58,421 bases of DNA from Octopus bimaculoides (taxonomy: Eukaryota), in the NCBI RefSeq assembly GCF_001194135.2, contig NC_068993.1:22052562-22110982 (forward strand), in the 5' to 3' direction. Positions 5,215 to 58,421 of this stretch are shown piece after piece; position 1 is the stretch's first letter, and the number at the start of each line of letters is the position of its first letter. The notes under the pieces were generated by a model. That model saw nothing but the letters and a program-made list of their open reading frames with translations. It had not been told where the DNA came from and searched no databases. The position numbers and the translations under genes were made by a program.

Positions 5215-5420
5215 TACTCTCTTTTAATTGCTTCAGTCACTTTGACTGCGGCCATGCTGGAGCACCGCCTTTAGTCGAGCAAATCGACCCTAGGACTTTA
5301 TCTTTGGAAGCCTAGTACTTATTCTATCGGCCTCTTTTGCCGAATCGCTAAGTTATGGGGAGGTAAACACACCACCATCGGTTGTCAAGCGATGTTCGGG
5401 GAACAAACACAGACACACAA
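5215..5420. mobile_element. Octopus SINE-like interspersed repeat (family also at 58220-58421)
   Basis: TTTAGTCGA..AAATCGA..AAGCCTAGTACTTATTCTA..TTTTGCCGAA..GCTAA shared with the copy at the window end; both end in CA-rich sequence. Confidence 0.8.
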
Positions 5421-6718: not shown

Positions 6719-7574
6719 TAGGGTCCGGCAAAATGATCTGACACATTTTTGGATTAAAAACAAAAATAAAAAAAGTAAAGAAACAAAAAAAATAATTTAA
6801 TTTTGAAAAGTACGTATAATGCCATTTTGTTTCATTTGGTTTTAAAAATTAAATCTGTCAAATGGGAGCCGTCATTGTCCACACACTGTCGAAGGCGTTC
6901 ATGAAAGTTGTCCATAACTCGGCGGATCATTTCATTAGGAATGGCAGCAATTTCTTGACGAATGGCATCTTTAAGTTGTTCAATAGATCGAGGGCGATTA
7001 ATGTATACCTTTGACTTGAGGTATCCCCAGAGGAAAAAATCGCAAGGATTTAAATCAGGTGATCGGGCGGGCCAAAATTCCCATCGCATTTCGAGAAGTG
7101 TGGGCTGTTGCCCCATCCTGTTGAAACCAAACATTTTCCGTATCGTGGAGCATATTCAATTTGGGTTTGAGAAAATTCTCTAGCATCTCACAATATCGAT
7201 CAGAGTTCACAGTCACTGTAACGTTGTCTTCTTCAAAGAAGTACGGACCCCATATATCGAATTCTGATACCGCACAACACACAGTCACCCGAGGAGAATG
7301 CAAAGGGCGTTCATGCAACTCACGAGGGTTGTTTTCGGCCCAGTATCTGAAGTTTTGCTTATTCACTGTGGCACACAGATGAAAATGCGCCTCGTCACTG
7401 AACAACACAACAGATGCATTGGTGATATTTTGTTGCATTTCCAAACACAATGCTCTGCGAAAGCAAAATGGCATTATATGTACCTTTCGAAAATGAAAAA
7501 AGCTTTTTTGTAACTTTAATTTATTTGCCTTTTATTAAACCTACAAATATGTCAGATCATTTTGCCGGACCCTA
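6719..7574 (-). mobile_element. Tc1/mariner transposon, internally deleted, DD41D(rosa)-like
   Basis: TIRs TAGGGTCCGGCAAAATGATCTGACA at both ends with TA TSD; FSDEAHF, WFQQDGATAHT and WPARSPDLNPCDFFLWG motifs; HTH missing; deletion and frameshift between the 2nd and 3rd catalytic D. Confidence 0.93.
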
Positions 7575-8013: not shown

Positions 8014-10605
8014 GCCTTTGCCCAGCTTCTAACGCTGAAGATATACTACAGTGTCAGCTGTTCATTACCAGTGAACTAAGGTAACACTCCTTCTTTTTCG
8101 AGCTCCTTCCGGAGTATTCGAGCGATTCCAAGCAGTGCTGTTTTCTGCAAGTGCTCTACCCTTATTGCTGCCCCAATTTGTTCCACGTACTTCTCGAGAT
8201 TTTTGCTCACTGTTCCCAGGGCTCCGACAATAATTGGTACTATTGTTACCCTTTTTATCGACCACGACTACTTAAATTCCCAAGCTAACCTATCATATCT
8301 CTCGACTTTTCTTTCTTCCTTATCGCATACCTTGTTGTCAGCTGGGCATGCTATATCTATGATCCAGCATAGTTTGTTTTCTTTCTCAATGACGACGATG
8401 TCTGGTTACCTTTTCTCTATCTCCTGGTCGCACTGAATCATAAAATCCCATAGGATCTTTGCATTATCATTTTTCGATGATGCCTTCGGATTTATATTCA
8501 TAAAATGGTTTTGCACTGTCAAGTCCATACTTGTTGCAAAGTGTACAATAAACAGTCCTTGCTATATTGTCATGACGCCTATTATATTCTTTCTGGGCTA
8601 GTGGCGTACATTGACTGGTAATATGGCATACGGGTTCGCTATTTTGTCCACAAATTCTGCAATTATCACTTTCGGATGTGTTGTCTATTTTGTATTTGAT
8701 GTAATTGATTCATAATACTTGCACTTGGGCGGGCACAGATTAGAGCCTCCGTTTCCGGTTTTAAATCACTTTCAGTCATCCGTAGCCATCCTTTTTTCTC
8801 AGACTGTTTTATCTTCAGCATTCCTATGAAATTGTCTATGAATTCTTTTCTTTATCCACCTATTTTCAGGTTCATTCATTCTCAAGTCCTTGTAAGGTGA
8901 ATTATCTTTGCAATCCTTCTTCCTACACAAGCCTGATCTTCTTACTTCCAATAATAGCGGTATTGCGGCATTTTTTATATGCCATACTGTGTTGTTGTTT
9001 TCTGCTTTATTGCTGTGTTCGTATCCAATAAGTCCTCTTCCTCTTCTTTTTCTTGGTACATACAGTCTGTCTGCGTCACTTCTTGGGTGGAGTATCCCAT
9101 ATGTAGTCAGCAACTTCTGTGTCTTTCTGTCTAAGCTCTTTAGTTCGTCTAGTGTCCAATCGATTATCCATGTTCCATATCTAAGACGTGAAACCGCCCG
9201 GGTGTTGATAACTTCAATTTTATTCCATCCGTTTAATTTCGACTTAAGTATTAGTCTCTGTCTGCGTAAGTACTCCACCTTAAATTTTTATTTCATTTCT
9301 TTCTCCATCAATTTATCCCTTTCCAATATCTCCAAGTACTCTTCTATCTGCTTCATAACCTCCTCCGACGGTATCGCTTGCCAGTCCATGCATTTGATTT
9401 TGCCTCTCTTCAAGACTAACACACCACACATTTTCAGTCCGAACCCCATTCTGATATCAGCACTGAAAGGATACACCGTATCAACGAGGGAACTGACTTG
9501 AGCTTTATCTTTACCATAAAGTCATCCATGAACAACAAGTGGCTGACTTTTTGTTGGCGGCTCTTGAATGCATACCTAGCTTTTACTTTCCTCAGAACCA
9601 GTGTTAGTGGTATCATGCACAGTACAAAGATCAGTGTGGACAGGCAGTCCTCCTGGAAGATGCCTCTCCCGATTTCTTTTGTCCCTAAACTTTTTCCATA
9701 TGCTGTCAGTTCCGTCCTCCAATTAGCCATACTTTTTCCAAGCAATCGCTCAAGATTCGATGCAATAGGAAATAGGTTCATGCTTTCCATTAGCCAAGAA
9801 TGTGGAATCATATCGTACGCCTTACAATAATTGACCCATGACATAGCTAAGTCAGTCTTCCTCCTCTTGCAGTCTCTAAGTACAATTTTGTCTACCAGGT
9901 GTTGATCCTTGGTACCTCTGCACTTACGCTTGCAATCCTTCTTCTCATGTGGAACGACTCTATTTTTTTGCAGATGTCCGTACATTCACTTTGGGACTAC
10001 TCCAGTCAATAATTTCCTCACAGGTAGCAAGCAGGATATCGGCCTGTAATTATCTACCATATTGCCATTTTCGATGTTCTTCAAGCACAGCACTGTCCTA
10101 CTGTGTTACTTGGTCGGCATTTAACAAGGTGTTAAGTTGTGCATATATTCATGCATGACATTCACCAAATCTTCTGATCCTGTAGCCTTGAACTTTATCT
10201 GGTCCCTGGGCCTTCCAGTTGCCCATTTTTCTGCTGATTTCTTTCACTTCCCTAACAGAAATGACTAGTTCTGCTTGTTTTGGAGAGACTACTATTTGTT
10301 TCAGTTCTTGCAACCATTCAGCGTCCTTTTTGTGCTTTTTGTCTTTGCTCCAGATGTCACTCCAAAACCTTTGACTTTCAATATTATCTGGTACCAACTT
10401 TTCATCTGTATACTCTCCATTTATTTCTTTTTAGAATCTCTTCTGATCTACTCTGAATAACCTATTCTGCTGGTATCCCTACATTCTTTGGTCGTACTTA
10501 CCATCTCTGCTTTCTTTGCAACGAGGCGCTGTTTCACTTCCTCCATTCCAACTTTCAGGCCCTTCCTTTCAATATCATACTTCTTGTTCAGTGCCCTGTA
10601 TTTAC
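7956..10605 (-). mobile_element. R4/Dong-clade non-LTR retrotransposon (RT, CCHC knuckle, restriction-like endonuclease), 5'-truncated, pseudogenised, (TAA)n tail
   Basis: KAYDMIPHSW, GIFQEDCLS and HLLFMDD RT motifs; DRLYVPRKRRGRGL; CRICG..HI..C knuckle; PDIVVIEK..IIDIACP nuclease motif; ORF ends ..ARILRKELEKEGVLP* at ~8076; many stops and frameshifts. Confidence 0.92.
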
Positions 10606-22781: not shown

Positions 22782-23655
22782 CTGACAGTATATTCTATTA
22801 TTGTATACGTAATGTAAAAAAAAATGATTAAAAAGAGAGATTATGACTGTGATAAAATAATGAAAGCAATATTTACTAAGCAAGTGAGCACTATTATACA
22901 AATAAATAATTAGACGTAAAATATCATAAAAATTACTAGAATTGGGAGTCAAATGTGAAAATACTACCAAGTGCCTAGCGTAAAACCGCCCGGAGGGTGG
23001 TCTCTCAGTTAGTCAGTATTAATTATGCTTATACGTATATGTATATGCTGCTGTATGTGAGTGTGTTTGTGTATTTGTGCGTATGTGTGTGTGTGTGTAT
23101 GCGTGCGTGTGCGTGTTTGCATGCGTGTGCGTGCGTGTGTGTGCGTGCGTGTGTGCACATATGTGTGCCTGTGTTTGTACGTATGTCTGTAAATTATCTG
23201 AGTGTGTATATGTGTATGTCCATGTATACTAAAACTAGGTAAATAAATCGGGAGCCAGCTAAAAGCAAAGTATTTCGTTGGTGATTGTCCAATCTTTGGC
23301 CTCCCTTTCTCCTAAACTGCAATGCAAATCCGTTTGTGACCGACTTGCTTACTTTGCTTAAATTATACCAAATGTATAAACTCTAACTCCACTCAAGCAC
23401 ACCTCTTAGATAGATCAGTTAAGAATGTATCTTGACTTTTATATTTTGTAATCAGCATTAGCGCATACTATGTTCATTATAGTTGTTAAGTATGCAAAAT
23501 CTCTTAACTTGCACATACCGAATGAAGTCTGTGCGTCGTTTCTAAAGATGGTTTTTCGAAAAAAGCGGCATGCTTCTCAAGCATGACCAACTATTTCGAG
23601 AATTCTGATCCATCGTCAAAGGCAATGACCAAACAGTTTTTAATTGTGTGTGTGT

Positions 23656-30029: not shown

Positions 30030-31080
30030 TGATGATATTCAGCTATCATTTTATTAATTCCTCCAAGGCGTGATGTTAATAACCCGTAAACATATTTCTC
30101 CTCATGCATTCTGAGAAGTGAAAGTGAAGCAGATTCAGATTATTTTCAGAGAATATACACTTTCAAATCTTTTTCAAAATTGCAGCCGTTTGAAACCAAA
30201 TGTCCAGCAAGTTCTGTCGAACTACTGTTATTATGCGTGACGTTGAATCTGTGCCCATTAAATCTAATCTTTTGTTTAATTGTTCTGTTGTAAAACCAAC
30301 ACAAATCAAGTTGGGTTTCGCGCATTCTGCCGCGTACACCAAATGGGAATATCTACCTGTCCCACCTTCTGTATAAATCATAACATTTCTGTTATGATTC
30401 TTGATGGAATTTACTTGACTCATGTTGCACAATGAGCAGGGCTTACCTCTCTTGCAGCTATTTTTTAAGTTACAACGTGCAGATACACCAATGTTCGTTT
30501 TCTTGGAGTCAGATATAGAGGTCAATAATTCTCTTATATTCTTATTCCGTCTAATGGCTACAATAGGTGACTGAGAAAATATCTGCTTGCAACGAGGTAA
30601 TTTTTTCGCACATGTTGGTGACTTTCTTGCAACACTTTTGAAAGGCCAGCGAAATTTAGGTACCAGTTAATCACTAAAGGAATTCTGCCATCTATGGTAT
30701 GGTGTTTGCTAATATTATGCGTGTAGGTTTGACTATCTTTGGTAATCTTAGCTATTTCGTTTGCTATTTCCTTTAATCGTGATTCACTTTAACGGCGATT
30801 GATATAATGGTGTACAAAAGCATTTGCATGTTTCCAATAATTCTCTGTCAGTACAAATTGGGATTTCGAATTTGACCGAATATGATGTAGATGATCAAAG
30901 CGGCGGTGGGGATAAATGTGGGATGACGTGGGCTTGCAAAATAAGACTGTCACTATTCTGACTCCAGAAAACTTAACTTTTGTGTCCAAAAATTCAGCGT
31001 TAGTTTTTGAAAAACTAGATGTAAATTTTATATTGGACTTAAAGCCATAGTTTTTGGTATAAGAGTCACATAAATGCATA
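30030..31080 (-). mobile_element. Penelope-like element, RT thumb plus GIY-YIG endonuclease (pseudogenised)
   Basis: IKFTSSFS..EFLDTKV..FCKPTSSHIY (RT C-terminus); LVYAAECAKPNLICVGFTTEQLNKR (GIY-YIG-like); EEKYVYGLLTSRLGGIN end motif. Confidence 0.88.
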
Positions 31081-35597: not shown

Positions 35598-36129
35598 CTA
35601 AAGTAATATTGTTGATAGTATCTGTGACTTTAGCAGTAGCTCATGTGAGAGCTTTAATCTGGTGATACAATGTTGTAAAACAATCAGTAGGCCGATAAGA
35701 GTGTCCGTTTAGGGTTAATGGCTTTCTAGAAATACTAAAAAGTTTCTTTTCTTTAAGTCACATAAAAAAATATTGTTGGCTAATATAAACCTTGATAAGA
35801 TAAAACGTTGGATAGCCAAAGGCGGGATGCTTGATATTTGGTCTTAGGAATCACAGTAGATACCGTATTAAACAATAACGACAGCATTTGTTAATAACAT
35901 AGTATTCTGCAGATTATATACGGGGCTGTTCTTATATCTGGGTGACTGAGAATGTAATTTTCTATTCAGAACGCAATACCGGCGCCGAAGTACAAAACTT
36001 TTGACTATCTTTCGTACCTGCTGATAATTCAGCATGATATGAGGCACAATGTGTATGTTTATATATATATATATGAGTATGTGTGTGTATGTGTGTGTGT
36101 GTGTGTGTGCGTACGTAGGCATCTCTGTA

Positions 36130-36158
<29 letters not shown>

Positions 36159-36165
<7 letters not shown>

Positions 36166-36564
36166 GTAGTATATTACCACTTAAGTGTGGCTGACCCCTA
36201 GGGGTGGATGTTACTGTTGCTTTTAGCCCCAGGAGGACATCTCCTCCAGCTGGCTTATCGACACACGACTGTGTCCTGTTTGCCAAGGGAGTTATCCCTC
36301 TCACCTCGACCAGCAGCACGAACGTATCCGGATTTCAGGGTTATTTCCCTTCGTCGGCGTTCGACAGCTGTCGNNNNNNNNNNNNNNNNNNNNNGATACG
36401 TTCGTGCTGCTGGTCGAGGTGAGAGGGATAACTCCCTTGGCAAACAGGACACAGTCGTGTGTCGATAAGCCAGCTGGAGGAGATGTCCTCCTGGGGCTAA
36501 AAGCAACAGTAACATCCACCCCTAGGGGTCAGCCACACTTAAGTGGCAATATACTACACTTTAT
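36159..36564. repeat. Near-perfect palindrome formed by two head-to-head HHR-bearing units (copy 3)
   Basis: Arms 36159-36328 and 36395-36564 are reverse complements at 169/170; centre CGACAG|CTGTCG at 36367/36368; 21 N gap in the right half. Confidence 0.9.
36319..36363 (-). ncRNA. Type I hammerhead-like motif (U4C variant)
   Basis: CGAACG-CCGACGA-AGGG(AAATAA)CCCT-GAAA-TCCGGA-T-A-CGTTCG; stem I 6 bp, stem II 4 bp, palindromic ATCCGGAT stem III. Confidence 0.78.
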
Positions 36565-36602
36565 CGTGCAGTTACTGTTAATACTTCATTTAGAGAATTA
36601 AC

Positions 36603-36634
<32 letters not shown>

Positions 36635-51005: not shown

Positions 51006-52017
51006 NNNNNNNNNNNNNNNNNNNNNNNNNNNNNNNNNNNNNNNNNNNNNNNNNNNNNNNNNNNNNNNNNNNNNNNNNNNNNNNNNNNNNNNNNNNNNNN
51101 NNNNNNNNNNNNNNNNNNNNNNNNNNNNNNNNNNNNNNNNNNNNNNNNNNNNNNNNNNNNNNNNNNNNNNNNNNNNNNNNNNNNNNNNNNNNNNNNNNNN
51201 NNNNNNNNNNNNNNNNNNNNNNNNNNNNNNNNNNNNNNNNNNNNNNNNNNNNNNNNNNNNNNNNNNNNNNNNNNNNNNNNNNNNNNNNNNNNNNNNNNNN
51301 NNNNNNNNNNNNNNNNNNNNNNNNNNNNNNNNNNNNNNNNNNNNNNNNNNNNNNNNNNNNNNNNNNNNNNNNNNNNNNNNNNNNNNNNNNNNNNNNNNNN
51401 NNNNNNNNNNNNNNNNNNNNNNNNNNNNNNNNNNNNNNNNNNNNNNNNNNNNNNNNNNNNNNNNNNNNNNNNNNNNNNNNNNNNNNNNNNNNNNNNNNNN
51501 NNNNNNNNNNNNNNNNNNNNNNNNNNNNNNNNNNNNNNNNNNNNNNNNNNNNNNNNNNNNNNNNNNNNNNNNNNNNNNNNNNNNNNNNNNNNNNNNNNNN
51601 NNNNNNNNNNNNNNNNNNNNNNNNNNNNNNNNNNNNNNNNNNNNNNNNNNNNNNNNNNNNNNNNNNNNNNNNNNNNNNNNNNNNNNNNNNNNNNNNNNNN
51701 NNNNNNNNNNNNNNNNNNNNNNNNNNNNNNNNNNNNNNNNNNNNNNNNNNNNNNNNNNNNNNNNNNNNNNNNNNNNNNNNNNNNNNNNNNNNNNNNNNNN
51801 NNNNNNNNNNNNNNNNNNNNNNNNNNNNNNNNNNNNNNNNNNNNNNNNNNNNNNNNNNNNNNNNNNNNNNNNNNNNNNNNNNNNNNNNNNNNNNNNNNNN
51901 NNNNNNNNNNNNNNNNNNNNNNNNNNNNNNNNNNNNNNNNNNNNNNNNNNNNNNNNNNNNNNNNNNNNNNNNNNNNNNTATATATATATACATACATGTA
52001 TGTATGTATGTGCATAT

Positions 52018-53535
52018 AACTTTCCATCCTACCCTTCACTTCTCTTGCACTATTTCCGACACCTCAGTCGCCTTTCTTGACATCTCGGTCAGCATTCATC
52101 ACTCCACTCTCACTACCTTTATCCACTACAAACACACTGACTCACACTCATACCTCAACTCTGCAGTGACAACCATGACATTAAGACTCAGTCTCAACTC
52201 ATGGCTCGCCACTTCATCCTACGTGCATATCCCCTTACCACTATCCACACCGCCCTTGCCAGTGTACGTTCCGTGGACCGTGCATCTGCTCTCTTCCCCG
52301 CACCCACACCGCCGTCACCTGTCTCCCGTTTCCCCTCACCTACCACCCCACCACTCTACCTCTCCAACGCATCATTCTCCGAGCCTTCCGGTGACTCCAG
52401 TCCGACCACTCCACTTGGCATATCTTCCTTAACCTCCCTCAATCGAGCCAACAACCTACGAGACCTCTTGGTCCGCAGCTTCTTCCCTAACCCAACACCC
52501 CAACCGGATTCCTTCCTCTGCTCCCGTCCACGCTGCCGCACTTACCCTTACCTCTTCAACACCACCCTCCTCACAGGCACCCATCATCGACCCTATCATA
52601 TCACTGACTCCTTCAACTGCACTTCTAGCAACGTTATCTACTACATCTCCTGCTCTCTCTGTCCTTCTCTATACATCAGTCAAATGAGACACCGCTTGGC
52701 TGATTGGTTCGCGGAACACCTCTAAGGCATCTGATTCGGCAACGACATCCCGGTCTCGCGCCATTTCCACTCTATCGGTCACTTTTTAAGACACCTGTCT
52801 GTGTTCGGATTGTCCTTGTACAGGGGCCATCGGGACTCCTGTCTTCGTCGTGAGCAGGGATTAATCTTCTCTCTTCGCTTCTTTGCGCCACATAGGCTCA
52901 ACTCTCCTCCCTTCTTCATCTGACCCTCCTCCTCTCTCCTCTCTTCCTCTCACACCTACTTTCTCCCACCCACCTCTCCTCTCTTGCCCTGACACCTACT
53001 TCCTCTCTTCAATCCTCCCCACCCTCTCCCTTCATCGTTACCCACTCCCTCGTTACCCCACCCCTACACATTCTAACCCCACCATCCCTATACATCCCAT
53101 CCCATCCACACCCTATCCCTTAAACCCCACACTTGATTCCCCCACTCTCGCCTCCACACCCCAACACCACCACACCACACACCACCATACCACACCACAC
53201 TCCATCATACCACCCCGCATACGCTAGCACTGACCCCTTCCCAGCACCTATACCATCATCCACGCACCTACACAAGCACACATAAACCCTTCAATGTCAC
53301 CAGCCCCCTTCTACACGCACATACACGCTATCACACACACATGTACGCGCACCTTCGCTTTGGGATCACCACTACTTTATTATCTCTACTACTTTCCTTT
53401 CTGTAGAAGAGCGTAGGCTCGAAACATAAAAGACTTTCTCACTTCCCGAGCGTTAAACTAATACATCTCTGTTTGTTGTTTACACACCCATCTTCGTCTT
53501 TTGTTTGTTTGTTTGTTTTTTTTTGTAAATTCTCA
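52018..53535 (+). mobile_element. Penelope-like element 3' part: RT thumb, GIY-YIG endonuclease, C-rich 3' region, HHR tail
   Basis: FHPTLHFSCTISDTSVAFLDISV..HYKHTDSHSYL; CSRPRCRTYP; NVIYYISCSLCPSLYISQMRHRLADWFAEHL; REQGLIFSL; stops and frameshifts. Confidence 0.92.
53397..53432 (+). ncRNA. Minimal PLE-type hammerhead-like motif, decayed
   Basis: CTTT-CTGTAGA-A-GAGC(GTAG)GCTC-GAAA-CAT-A-AAAG; A6 changed to U; ACAT is likely CpG decay of ACGT. Confidence 0.55.
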
Positions 53536-56765: not shown

Positions 56766-56994
56766 CTGAAAGACTCAGAACGCGTGTATATATTCACGCA
56801 GAGATTTGGCTATGTATGTAGGAATGTATGTATGTATGTATATATGTATGTATGCTTTTGCCCCTATGTGTTCGAGCATGTGTCTGATCCAACCAATAAA
56901 TGTTCCTCTGTTTATGTTTTGCCAGCAAAATAGTAAATACATTCAAAGAAGACATTATTCTTTAATAATTATATTTCTTAAAGAGAGAGTTAAA

Positions 56995-57061
56995 TTATAT
57001 TAAATCTCTGAGCGAGAGATAAACACTAACAGTACGAAATCGTAAAATATATTTGCCAACT
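56995..57061 (+). repeat. 67 bp direct repeat, left
   Basis: 63/67 identical to 57353-57419. Confidence 0.92.
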
Positions 57062-57352
57062 AAATGTGGTGGTCCTATAGAGGACGATGTTACTGTTGTT
57101 TTTAGCCCCAGGAAGACATTTTCTCCAGCTGGCTAACGACACACAGTCTGTGTCCGATTATAATTTGCGCGGGAGATCATCGCTTCCATCTCTAGCCTTA
57201 TGTGACACACACAAATCCGGGTTTCTGGTTGGCTACCCATCTTCAGTGTGTGTTAATCACTGGCTAGTGATGGAGAACTCATTCCACTCGTAAAATACTT
57301 TATCCTTTTTCTAGCGACTCACTGTCTCTGATCTAGTAAAGTGAGAGATAAG
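57047..57352 (-). mobile_element. HHR-bearing short element, copy 4
   Basis: GATGTTACTGTTG.TTTTAGCCCCAGGA.GACAT.T.CTCCAGCTGGCT shared with the palindrome arm; HHR at its 5' side. Confidence 0.82.
57207..57253 (-). ncRNA. Type I hammerhead-like motif with canonical core
   Basis: ACACACA-CTGAAGA-TGG(GTAGCCAA)CCA-GAAA-CCCGGA-T-T-TGTGTGT; stem I 7 bp, stem II 3 bp, near-palindromic stem III, AUU cleavage triplet. Confidence 0.75.
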
Positions 57353-57419
57353 TTATATTAAATCTCTGAGCGAGAGATAAACAGTAACAATACTGAATCG
57401 TAAAATATATTTGCCAACT
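57353..57419 (+). repeat. 67 bp direct repeat, right
   Basis: 63/67 identical to 56995-57061. Confidence 0.92.
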
Positions 57420-57841
57420 TATTTCTTGTATATCGCTATTTGTGAACACGTAACTCAAGGGTCACTCGTCAGTGATTCAGTGCATTTTTGATTTGGGATT
57501 GTGTCTGGAAGTCATTGCAACTCACAAAAGCTCATTCGCAAACACATACACATAATATGTATATGTATTTGTGTGTGTGTGTGTGTGTGTGTATGTGTGT
57601 GTGTGTGTGCGTGCGTGTTTGCGTGCGTGCTTGCTTGCGTGTTTGTGTGCGTTTATGTATTTGTATGTGTGTGTGTACATGAATTTCCCTCCACCAAATT
57701 CCACTCATACATTGGTCAACCAAGGGAAATCGTATTCATGATATTAGCCCAAATTGTTCCACTCAGTCATTTGCCTGCTAATTGATTTTGATAGTCATAG
57801 ATTTGTGACTGCGCTTTTAAGACTTAAAATGTCGATGATAG

Positions 57842-58219: not shown

Positions 58220-58421
58220 CATGTCGTTGCCCTTAGTCGAAAAAATCGAGACTACAACTTGCTCTTTGTAAGCCTAGTACTTATTCTAGTGGGTAACTTT
58301 TGCCGAACTGCTAAATTACGGGGACCGAACCATCGGTTTACAAGCGGTGGGTGGGGGTACAAAGACAGACACATACACACACGCCTACACATGCACACAC
58401 ACACACACACACACACACACA
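58220..58421. mobile_element. SINE-like repeat (same family as 5215-5420) with (CA)n
   Basis: CTTAGTCGAAAAAATCGA..TTTGTAAGCCTAGTACTTATTCTA..TTTTGCCGAACTGCTAA. Confidence 0.8.

Follow-up and report, generated by a model that had tools for sequence, protein, structure and literature searches.

The window analysed here, a 58,421-nt stretch of Octopus bimaculoides DNA (contig NC_068993.1, positions 22,052,562 to 22,110,982), has a GC content of 34%, is rich in microsatellites and is interrupted by 12 runs of N. Two copies of a non-coding repeat lie head-to-head on either side of one of these runs, and TA repeats abut both outer ends of the pair. A more diverged relative of the same repeat lies elsewhere in the window. 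The features of the two loci, with coordinates counted from the first base of the window, are the following.

36135-36161, no strand: (TA)n run of 27 nt at the outer end of the left arm, putatively one half of the microsatellite target.
36159-36367, minus strand (sense): left repeat copy, 209 nt to the axis, 5'-truncated at the ribozyme and without the 41-nt 3' tail.
36319-36363, minus strand: minimal type I hammerhead-like motif, from descriptor scan and fold, with predicted cleavage between 36325 and 36324.
36362-36373, no strand: palindrome CGACAGCTGTCG at the end of the contig; its inner CAGCTG is possibly the native distal helix I.
36374-36394, no strand: assembly gap of 21 N, an estimated length (33 nt by symmetry).
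36395-36564, plus strand (sense): right repeat copy, visible from a point 4 nt short of the predicted cleavage site of the hammerhead, with the core hidden.
36565-36605, plus strand: 41-nt 3' tail, present on the right copy but missing from the left arm; its homologue is the 3' end of the third copy.
36603-36627, no strand: (AT)n run on the far side of the tail, putatively the second half of the target; a TATG-type microsatellite comes next.
56979-57419, minus strand: diverged third copy, 76-81% identical over the body of the repeat, consisting of an 83-nt 5'-truncated partial copy and then a full 358-nt unit.
57207-57253, minus strand: second descriptor match, a hammerhead-like motif in the third copy whose core is the canonical CUGAAGA.

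The inverted-repeat arms delimited by a repeat finder (36159-36328 and 36395-36564) are 170 nt each and 99% complementary (99.4% identical), a match too long for chance to matter. Their sole difference is the A at 36176, which stands against position 36547, the reverse complement of which is G. An initial annotation of this DNA had described arms of 170 bp with one mismatch and a 12-bp palindrome directly before a gap of 21 N, and both descriptions are borne out, the left contig ending in CGACAGCTGTCG. When the axis is set between 36367 and 36368, the right arm begins at mirror position 39 and a perfect mirror requires 33 hidden bases, namely AACGCCGACGAAGGGAAATAACCCTGAAATCCG; the figure of about 33 hidden nucleotides given in the annotation is correct and the same sequence was recovered exactly. 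That annotation had also called the whole a near-perfect head-to-head palindrome, which is true of the arms but not of the structure taken strictly, as the right arm runs on for 41 nt in element sequence (36565-36605) and the left arm does not. The outer termini of the locus are AAAGTGTAG...CTACACTTT.

Past the axis, 6 nt of mirror sequence are visible in the left contig. Up to three of these bases, the inner CAG, may be native to the element, which leaves about three that are unambiguously mirror sequence. In the fold of lowest energy, CAGC is base-paired to a GCUG that lies immediately 3' of helix I of the hammerhead motif, and an independent Octopus copy, deduced from the protein entry P0001 discussed below, keeps at least AG before CTGTC and then departs from the mirror. 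Continuity across the 21-N gap, a second hammerhead within it and perfect symmetry are predictions, and we see a slightly better than even chance that the centre is perfectly palindromic and holds a second ribozyme. The pair may be of recent origin, to judge from one mismatch per 170 nt of aligned arm.

The hammerhead-like motifs were located with a relaxed, purpose-made hammerhead descriptor, for which dinucleotide shuffles served as the background; it gave two matches in the window against 0.22 expected in the shuffles. Read in the sense direction, the motif of the left arm is CGAACG / CCGACGA / AGGG-AAAUAA-CCCU / GAAA / U-CCGG-A / U-A / CGUUCG, in which CGAACG and CGUUCG form helix I, AGGG-AAAUAA-CCCU forms helix II, and helix III is a single U-A base pair with a CCGG tetraloop. 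The topology is that of type I, the GAAA, U16.1 and H17 are in place and both helix I and helix II are paired, but the core reads CCGACGA against the consensus CUGANGA, so that the conserved core breaks down at position 4, where U is replaced by C. U4 is a base of the conserved core, and classical mutagenesis predicts a large loss of activity when it is changed. As judged from this substitution the visible ribozyme of the palindrome is probably crippled, although the base lies 18 nt from the end of the contig and a sequencing error is possible. To speak of a sense ribozyme unit, as had been done before, is therefore an overstatement for the visible copy. No hammerhead was matched in Rfam, either over the whole window at the gathering threshold or in three small sub-windows at E<=10; this is uninformative because the third copy, with its canonical core, was missed as well. 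Minimal hammerheads of this form, in which a palindromic tetraloop caps a helix III of one base pair, are known from newt and axolotl repeats and from Penelope-like elements (PLEs), and often act as a dimer (PMC7229834; PMC6155905). The point of inversion coincides with the 5' edge of the ribozyme, as had been proposed; more precisely, it falls within distal helix I.

The third copy forms a partial head-to-tail tandem (period 358 nt), amounting to about 1.2 units with a single hammerhead, and lies outside any (TA)n run. Its motif has ACACACA and UGUGUGU in helix I and UGG...CCA in helix II, followed by GAAA, C-CCGG-A and UU, and it has the full conserved core of a type I hammerhead. The ending GAAA-N-CCGG-A-U-H is common to the motifs of the arm and of the third copy. 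Between the two, four positions in helices I and II have changed on both sides with pairing kept, and these compensatory changes support selection for the hammerhead fold in the repeat family. The motif occupies homologous positions in the arm and the third copy, which upholds the earlier view of the arms as copies of a hammerhead-type repeat. Comparison with the third copy also defines the limits of the other two. Approximately 95 nt of its 5' sequence are absent from the palindrome copies, and both arms are for this reason taken to be 5'-truncated at the ribozyme; its 3' region aligns with 36565-36605 (in a match to 56996-57155), which identifies these 41 nt as the tail of the element.

At the protein level the only relative of an arm pseudo-ORF is A0A0L8IHK6 (here P0001), from Octopus bimaculoides. 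In UniRef this 54-aa entry (A0A0L8IHK6_OCTBM) is annotated as an 'uncharacterized protein', and on comparison of its sequence it appears to be a spurious antisense ORF of another repeat copy, with a frame switch relative to the copy in the window. In the copy that encodes it an A-U pair of helix I has become G-U and pairing is retained. This Octopus copy elsewhere is about 97% identical, from which it follows that the repeat is multi-copy. A homologue search with the sense-strand ORF of the arm gave no relatives, an exhaustive HMMER search returned P0001 and low-complexity matches only, and exact protein look-ups of three window ORFs and of P0001, made in search of independent assemblies, gave no record. 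A conserved 23-27-mer DNA pattern had 0 matches in metagenomes and in a collection of prokaryote genomes. A tRNA-derived SINE was considered for the repeat and rejected, since ARAGORN found no tRNA-like sequence in the window. The unit looks like a solo pseudo-LTR (pLTR) or a retrozyme-like derivative of PLEs.

Penelope families are present in octopus genomes according to the literature. The repeat unit itself is non-coding and there is no ORF for a reverse transcriptase (RT) or endonuclease (EN) between or beside the repeats. Elsewhere in the window two ORFs, at 52004-52725 (plus strand) and 30163-31079 (minus strand), contain the motifs FLD..V...K.T..H.Y and C..C...NVIYYISC...YI.Q, which we take to recall remnants of the C-terminus of a PLE RT (RT-thumb) and of a GIY-YIG endonuclease. 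The two ORFs are weakly similar to each other (E=4e-4 in pairwise BLASTP); neither has a Pfam match at E<=0.01 or at E<=10 or a homologue at E<=0.001, and the PLE-like ORFs and the repeat unit have no DNA similarity. The ORF at 52004-52725 starts right after a gap of 973 N that is flanked by TA repeats. A different RT fragment, among the ORFs at 8799-9985 and 7055-7474 (both minus strand), matches Pfam RVT_1 with E=1.3e-7 and probably belongs to a non-LTR retrotransposon; an ORF near this fragment, in the same pair of minus-strand ORFs, is presumably mariner-type transposase-like, judged by eye and with no Pfam match. Two pairs of dispersed repeats (58229-58373 with 5267-5417, and 57555-57680 with 23037-23160), each about 75% identical over 125-150 nt, are unrelated to the hammerhead unit.

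The arms have a GC content of about 51% (51.6% for the left copy) against 34% in their flanks, which marks them as foreign to the DNA around them. The TA runs that abut the outer ends (36135-36161 and 36603-36627) lie within a larger compound TG/TA/TATG microsatellite, with a compound TG/TA stretch at 36049-36130, and the palindrome locus resembles a single insertion into a (TA)n target, where a target-site duplication is unreadable inside the microsatellite. At 36113-36187 (plus strand) Rfam gave weak matches to mir-297, mir-1277 and a coronavirus 5'UTR, which were rejected as RNA genes and attributed to TA/TG microsatellite noise.

We put at roughly 60% the probability that the palindrome is a single retrotransposition insert in (TA)n made up of two 5'-truncated, non-coding copies of the hammerhead-motif repeat, placed head-to-head and derived from PLEs. 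In such an event a PLE reverse transcriptase/GIY-YIG endonuclease, supplied in trans, would cleave the (TA)n target on both strands, each of which would prime cDNA synthesis. Initiation at a distal RT start site would give the right arm with its 41-nt tail, and initiation at a proximal site the left arm without a tail. Both cDNAs would proceed to the same point, the 5' edge of the ribozyme. Annealing at the self-complementary CAGCTG of distal helix I, or a template switch there, could then join their 3' ends, the product being a palindrome of about 420 bp. The 21-N gap would be accounted for as well, because a palindrome of this length defeats closure with short reads. That the structure is a by-product of PLE-type reverse transcription had been suggested before, and the suggestion fits the head-to-head copies, the tail on one arm, the bracketing (TA)n and the gap at the junction, an architecture that is already known. 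The snap-back or template switch then offered as the mechanism is one option only, and the tail on a single arm fits two-strand priming at two RT start sites better (PMC11167929).

The pair could also be an artefact of assembly: there may be one unit here, or units from two loci, with contigs that end in the repeat wrongly joined across the N run by a scaffolder or gap-closer. The gap is almost exactly central, the window is rich in gaps (12) of the kind left by short-read assembly, the (TA)n flanks are self-complementary and prone to mis-threading, the repeat is multi-copy with its copy of about 97% identity elsewhere in Octopus, and PLE structures are known to confuse short-read assemblies (PMC8557442, PMC3846280). 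Against this, the arms differ by one base and have different outer junctions, tail on one and none on the other, so that they represent two physical copies drawn from distinct reads, rather than a single copy placed on both sides. The left contig also carries mirror sequence past the axis, and the estimated gap of 21 is close to the 33 expected of a true, symmetric dimer, whereas one unit with these unique flanks on either side would be expected to give a strongly negative gap. A systematic habit of the assembler is not indicated either, because the gap at 36374 is alone among the 12 in having complex inverted duplicate flanks and none of the other 11 has duplicated flanks. Ten of the 12 gaps (1989, 4296, 15194, 17686, 19569, 20827, 25744, 47391, 51006 and 56025) are plain microsatellite gaps inside or beside TA, TG or CA repeats; the gap at 1198 comes after a T-rich run. 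Moreover, breaks of this type have been seen as the consequence of genuine inverted structures (PMC3846280). A haplotig duplication was rejected, as the left unique flank would have to be inverted too. We consider it unlikely that the join is an artefact and are fairly confident that the inverted pair is real.

If the pair is accepted, it could still have arisen from a single target-primed cDNA that, on reaching the end of its template, folded back or switched and copied itself into the second arm. Self-priming of this kind was favoured for the junction palindromes of inverted pLTRs by Arkhipova et al. (2013, PMC3846280), both arms of the octopus pair seem to end at the same point, and the self-complementary CAGCTG lies at the junction. 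However, an arm made by self-copying should include the 41-nt tail and flanking sequence, and the left arm halts 41 nt short, at an end that resembles a second initiation site. In addition, a 6-nt palindrome needs a loop to fold on itself but can pair between two molecules, and extension on two strands from two start sites has been demonstrated biochemically for a PLE (PMC11167929); a snap-back origin, though nearly related to the two-strand model, is accordingly judged improbable. The same tail weighs on an inverted duplication at the DNA level, by fold-back repair of a break or by replication template switching at CAGCTG after a single insertion. A short palindrome of the CAGCTG kind can act as the seed of a fold-back inverted duplication, and the arms are 99.4% identical, but copying outwards should have included the tail, an additional deletion of 41 bp exactly at the arm end would be required, and (TA)n stands at both outer ends as it would after one insertion event. 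We give this origin only a very small chance. Smaller still is the chance that the locus is a DNA transposon of the foldback or MITE type, with long terminal inverted repeats and TA duplicated at the target site, which it resembles in being nearly all inverted repeat with TA on the left flank. The related third copy is head-to-tail and not inverted, and it is collinear for at least 41 nt past the arm end and for about 95 nt past the axis; because it continues past both boundaries, the arm ends are not the termini of an element. A hammerhead motif is, besides, typical of retroelements. Priming on both target strands by a PLE enzyme remains the reading that we prefer.

As regards function, none is evident for the palindrome locus. 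When the gap is filled by prediction, the reconstructed 418-nt transcript is modelled as a single long duplex whose minimum free energy is about -444 kcal/mol, and an RNA duplex of some 200 bp would be predicted to bury a ribozyme that is already weakened by U4C. Processing of such an RNA by ADAR or Dicer, and a cruciform or hairpin in the DNA, are plausible. The A/G difference between the arms was considered as an ADAR footprint and rejected; it is U/C on the sense strand of the element, and one site carries no weight. A broader proposal would have CAGCTG set the point of inversion throughout the family, with cDNAs pairing end-to-end and routinely being fixed as dimers that encode perfect hairpin RNAs of about 200 bp, possibly feeding the highly active ADAR editing or the small-RNA pathways of the octopus; this we think very doubtful. 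If the join is real, the locus records a single PLE retrotransposition event in compact, natural form, in which two-strand cDNA priming, alternative RT start sites, one giving the tail and the other not, and a 6-bp self-complementary junction would be preserved together, and the inverted pair itself explains why the assembly breaks here. Such a record would agree with in vitro work on a vertebrate PLE and extend it to a non-autonomous element of a mollusc.

Among known systems, L1 twin priming offers a parallel from outside the PLEs. In this process, reportedly set out by Ostertag and Kazazian in 2001, both nicked strands are said to prime cDNA and the products to be joined at microhomology, giving inverted segments. 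The octopus locus is similar in the proposed priming on both target strands and the joining of cDNAs into inverted segments. It differs in that twin priming involves one RNA with internal second priming and leaves an inverted 5' segment beside a direct 3' segment, whereas both arms of the octopus pair carry the 3' part of the element facing outward. The retrozymes of animals, which have been argued to be derivatives of PLE pLTRs (Li et al., 2026, bioRxiv 10.64898/2026.07.22.740005), are closer in kind. Like the non-LTR retrozymes of animals, the octopus unit is non-coding, falls in the range of about 250-360 nt and may share the proposed pLTR origin (Cervera and de la Pena, 2020, PMC7229834; bioRxiv 10.64898/2026.07.22.740005), and like amphibian repeats it has a type I hammerhead-like motif whose helix III is a single base pair under a palindromic tetraloop (PMC7229834). 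Unlike retrozymes, which form head-to-tail arrays of units of about 170-400 nt and give circular RNAs, it occurs here as an inverted pair and at the other locus as 1.2 tandem units, and its GC content of 51% exceeds the value of under 45% quoted for retrozymes.

The PLEs themselves, in their endonuclease-containing form, provide the fullest comparison. Head-to-head inverted pLTRs, palindromes at the junction, an optional tail of 31 bp, solo pLTRs mobilised in trans and breaks in assemblies were all described by Arkhipova et al. (2013, PMC3846280), and the same features together with a bias towards (TA)n by Craig et al. (2021, PMC8557442). The palindrome locus resembles these insertions in its head-to-head, 5'-truncated copy, in the junction palindrome, interrupted here by the 21-N gap, in a tail at one end only (41 nt, where that of PLEs is an optional 30-40 bp), in the hammerhead-like motif within the repeat, in the (TA)n target and in the short-read break at the junction. 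The partial head-to-tail tandem that is also characteristic of PLE pLTRs is found at the third copy (56979-57419) and not at the palindrome. Unlike PLEs, the palindrome locus is a bare pLTR-like pair without an RT/EN ORF, its visible core has C for U4 and its centre is unsequenced. For the PLE protein PAc (Poseidon of Anolis carolinensis) it has been shown that both target strands are cleaved and extended, that cleavage by the hammerhead is dispensable and that RT has two internal start sites, set apart by the length of the genomic tail (Frangieh et al., 2024, PMC11167929). This in vitro mechanism fits the octopus locus, although PAc is from an autonomous element of a vertebrate and was studied in vitro, where the formation of an inverted dimer was not itself reconstituted (PMC11167929). 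Pairs of inverted pLTRs with a palindrome at the junction go back to the first descriptions of Penelope, and no new question is opened by this one; the head-to-head layout with tail, palindrome and (TA)n is an already described PLE architecture, of which the octopus pair adds a further example.
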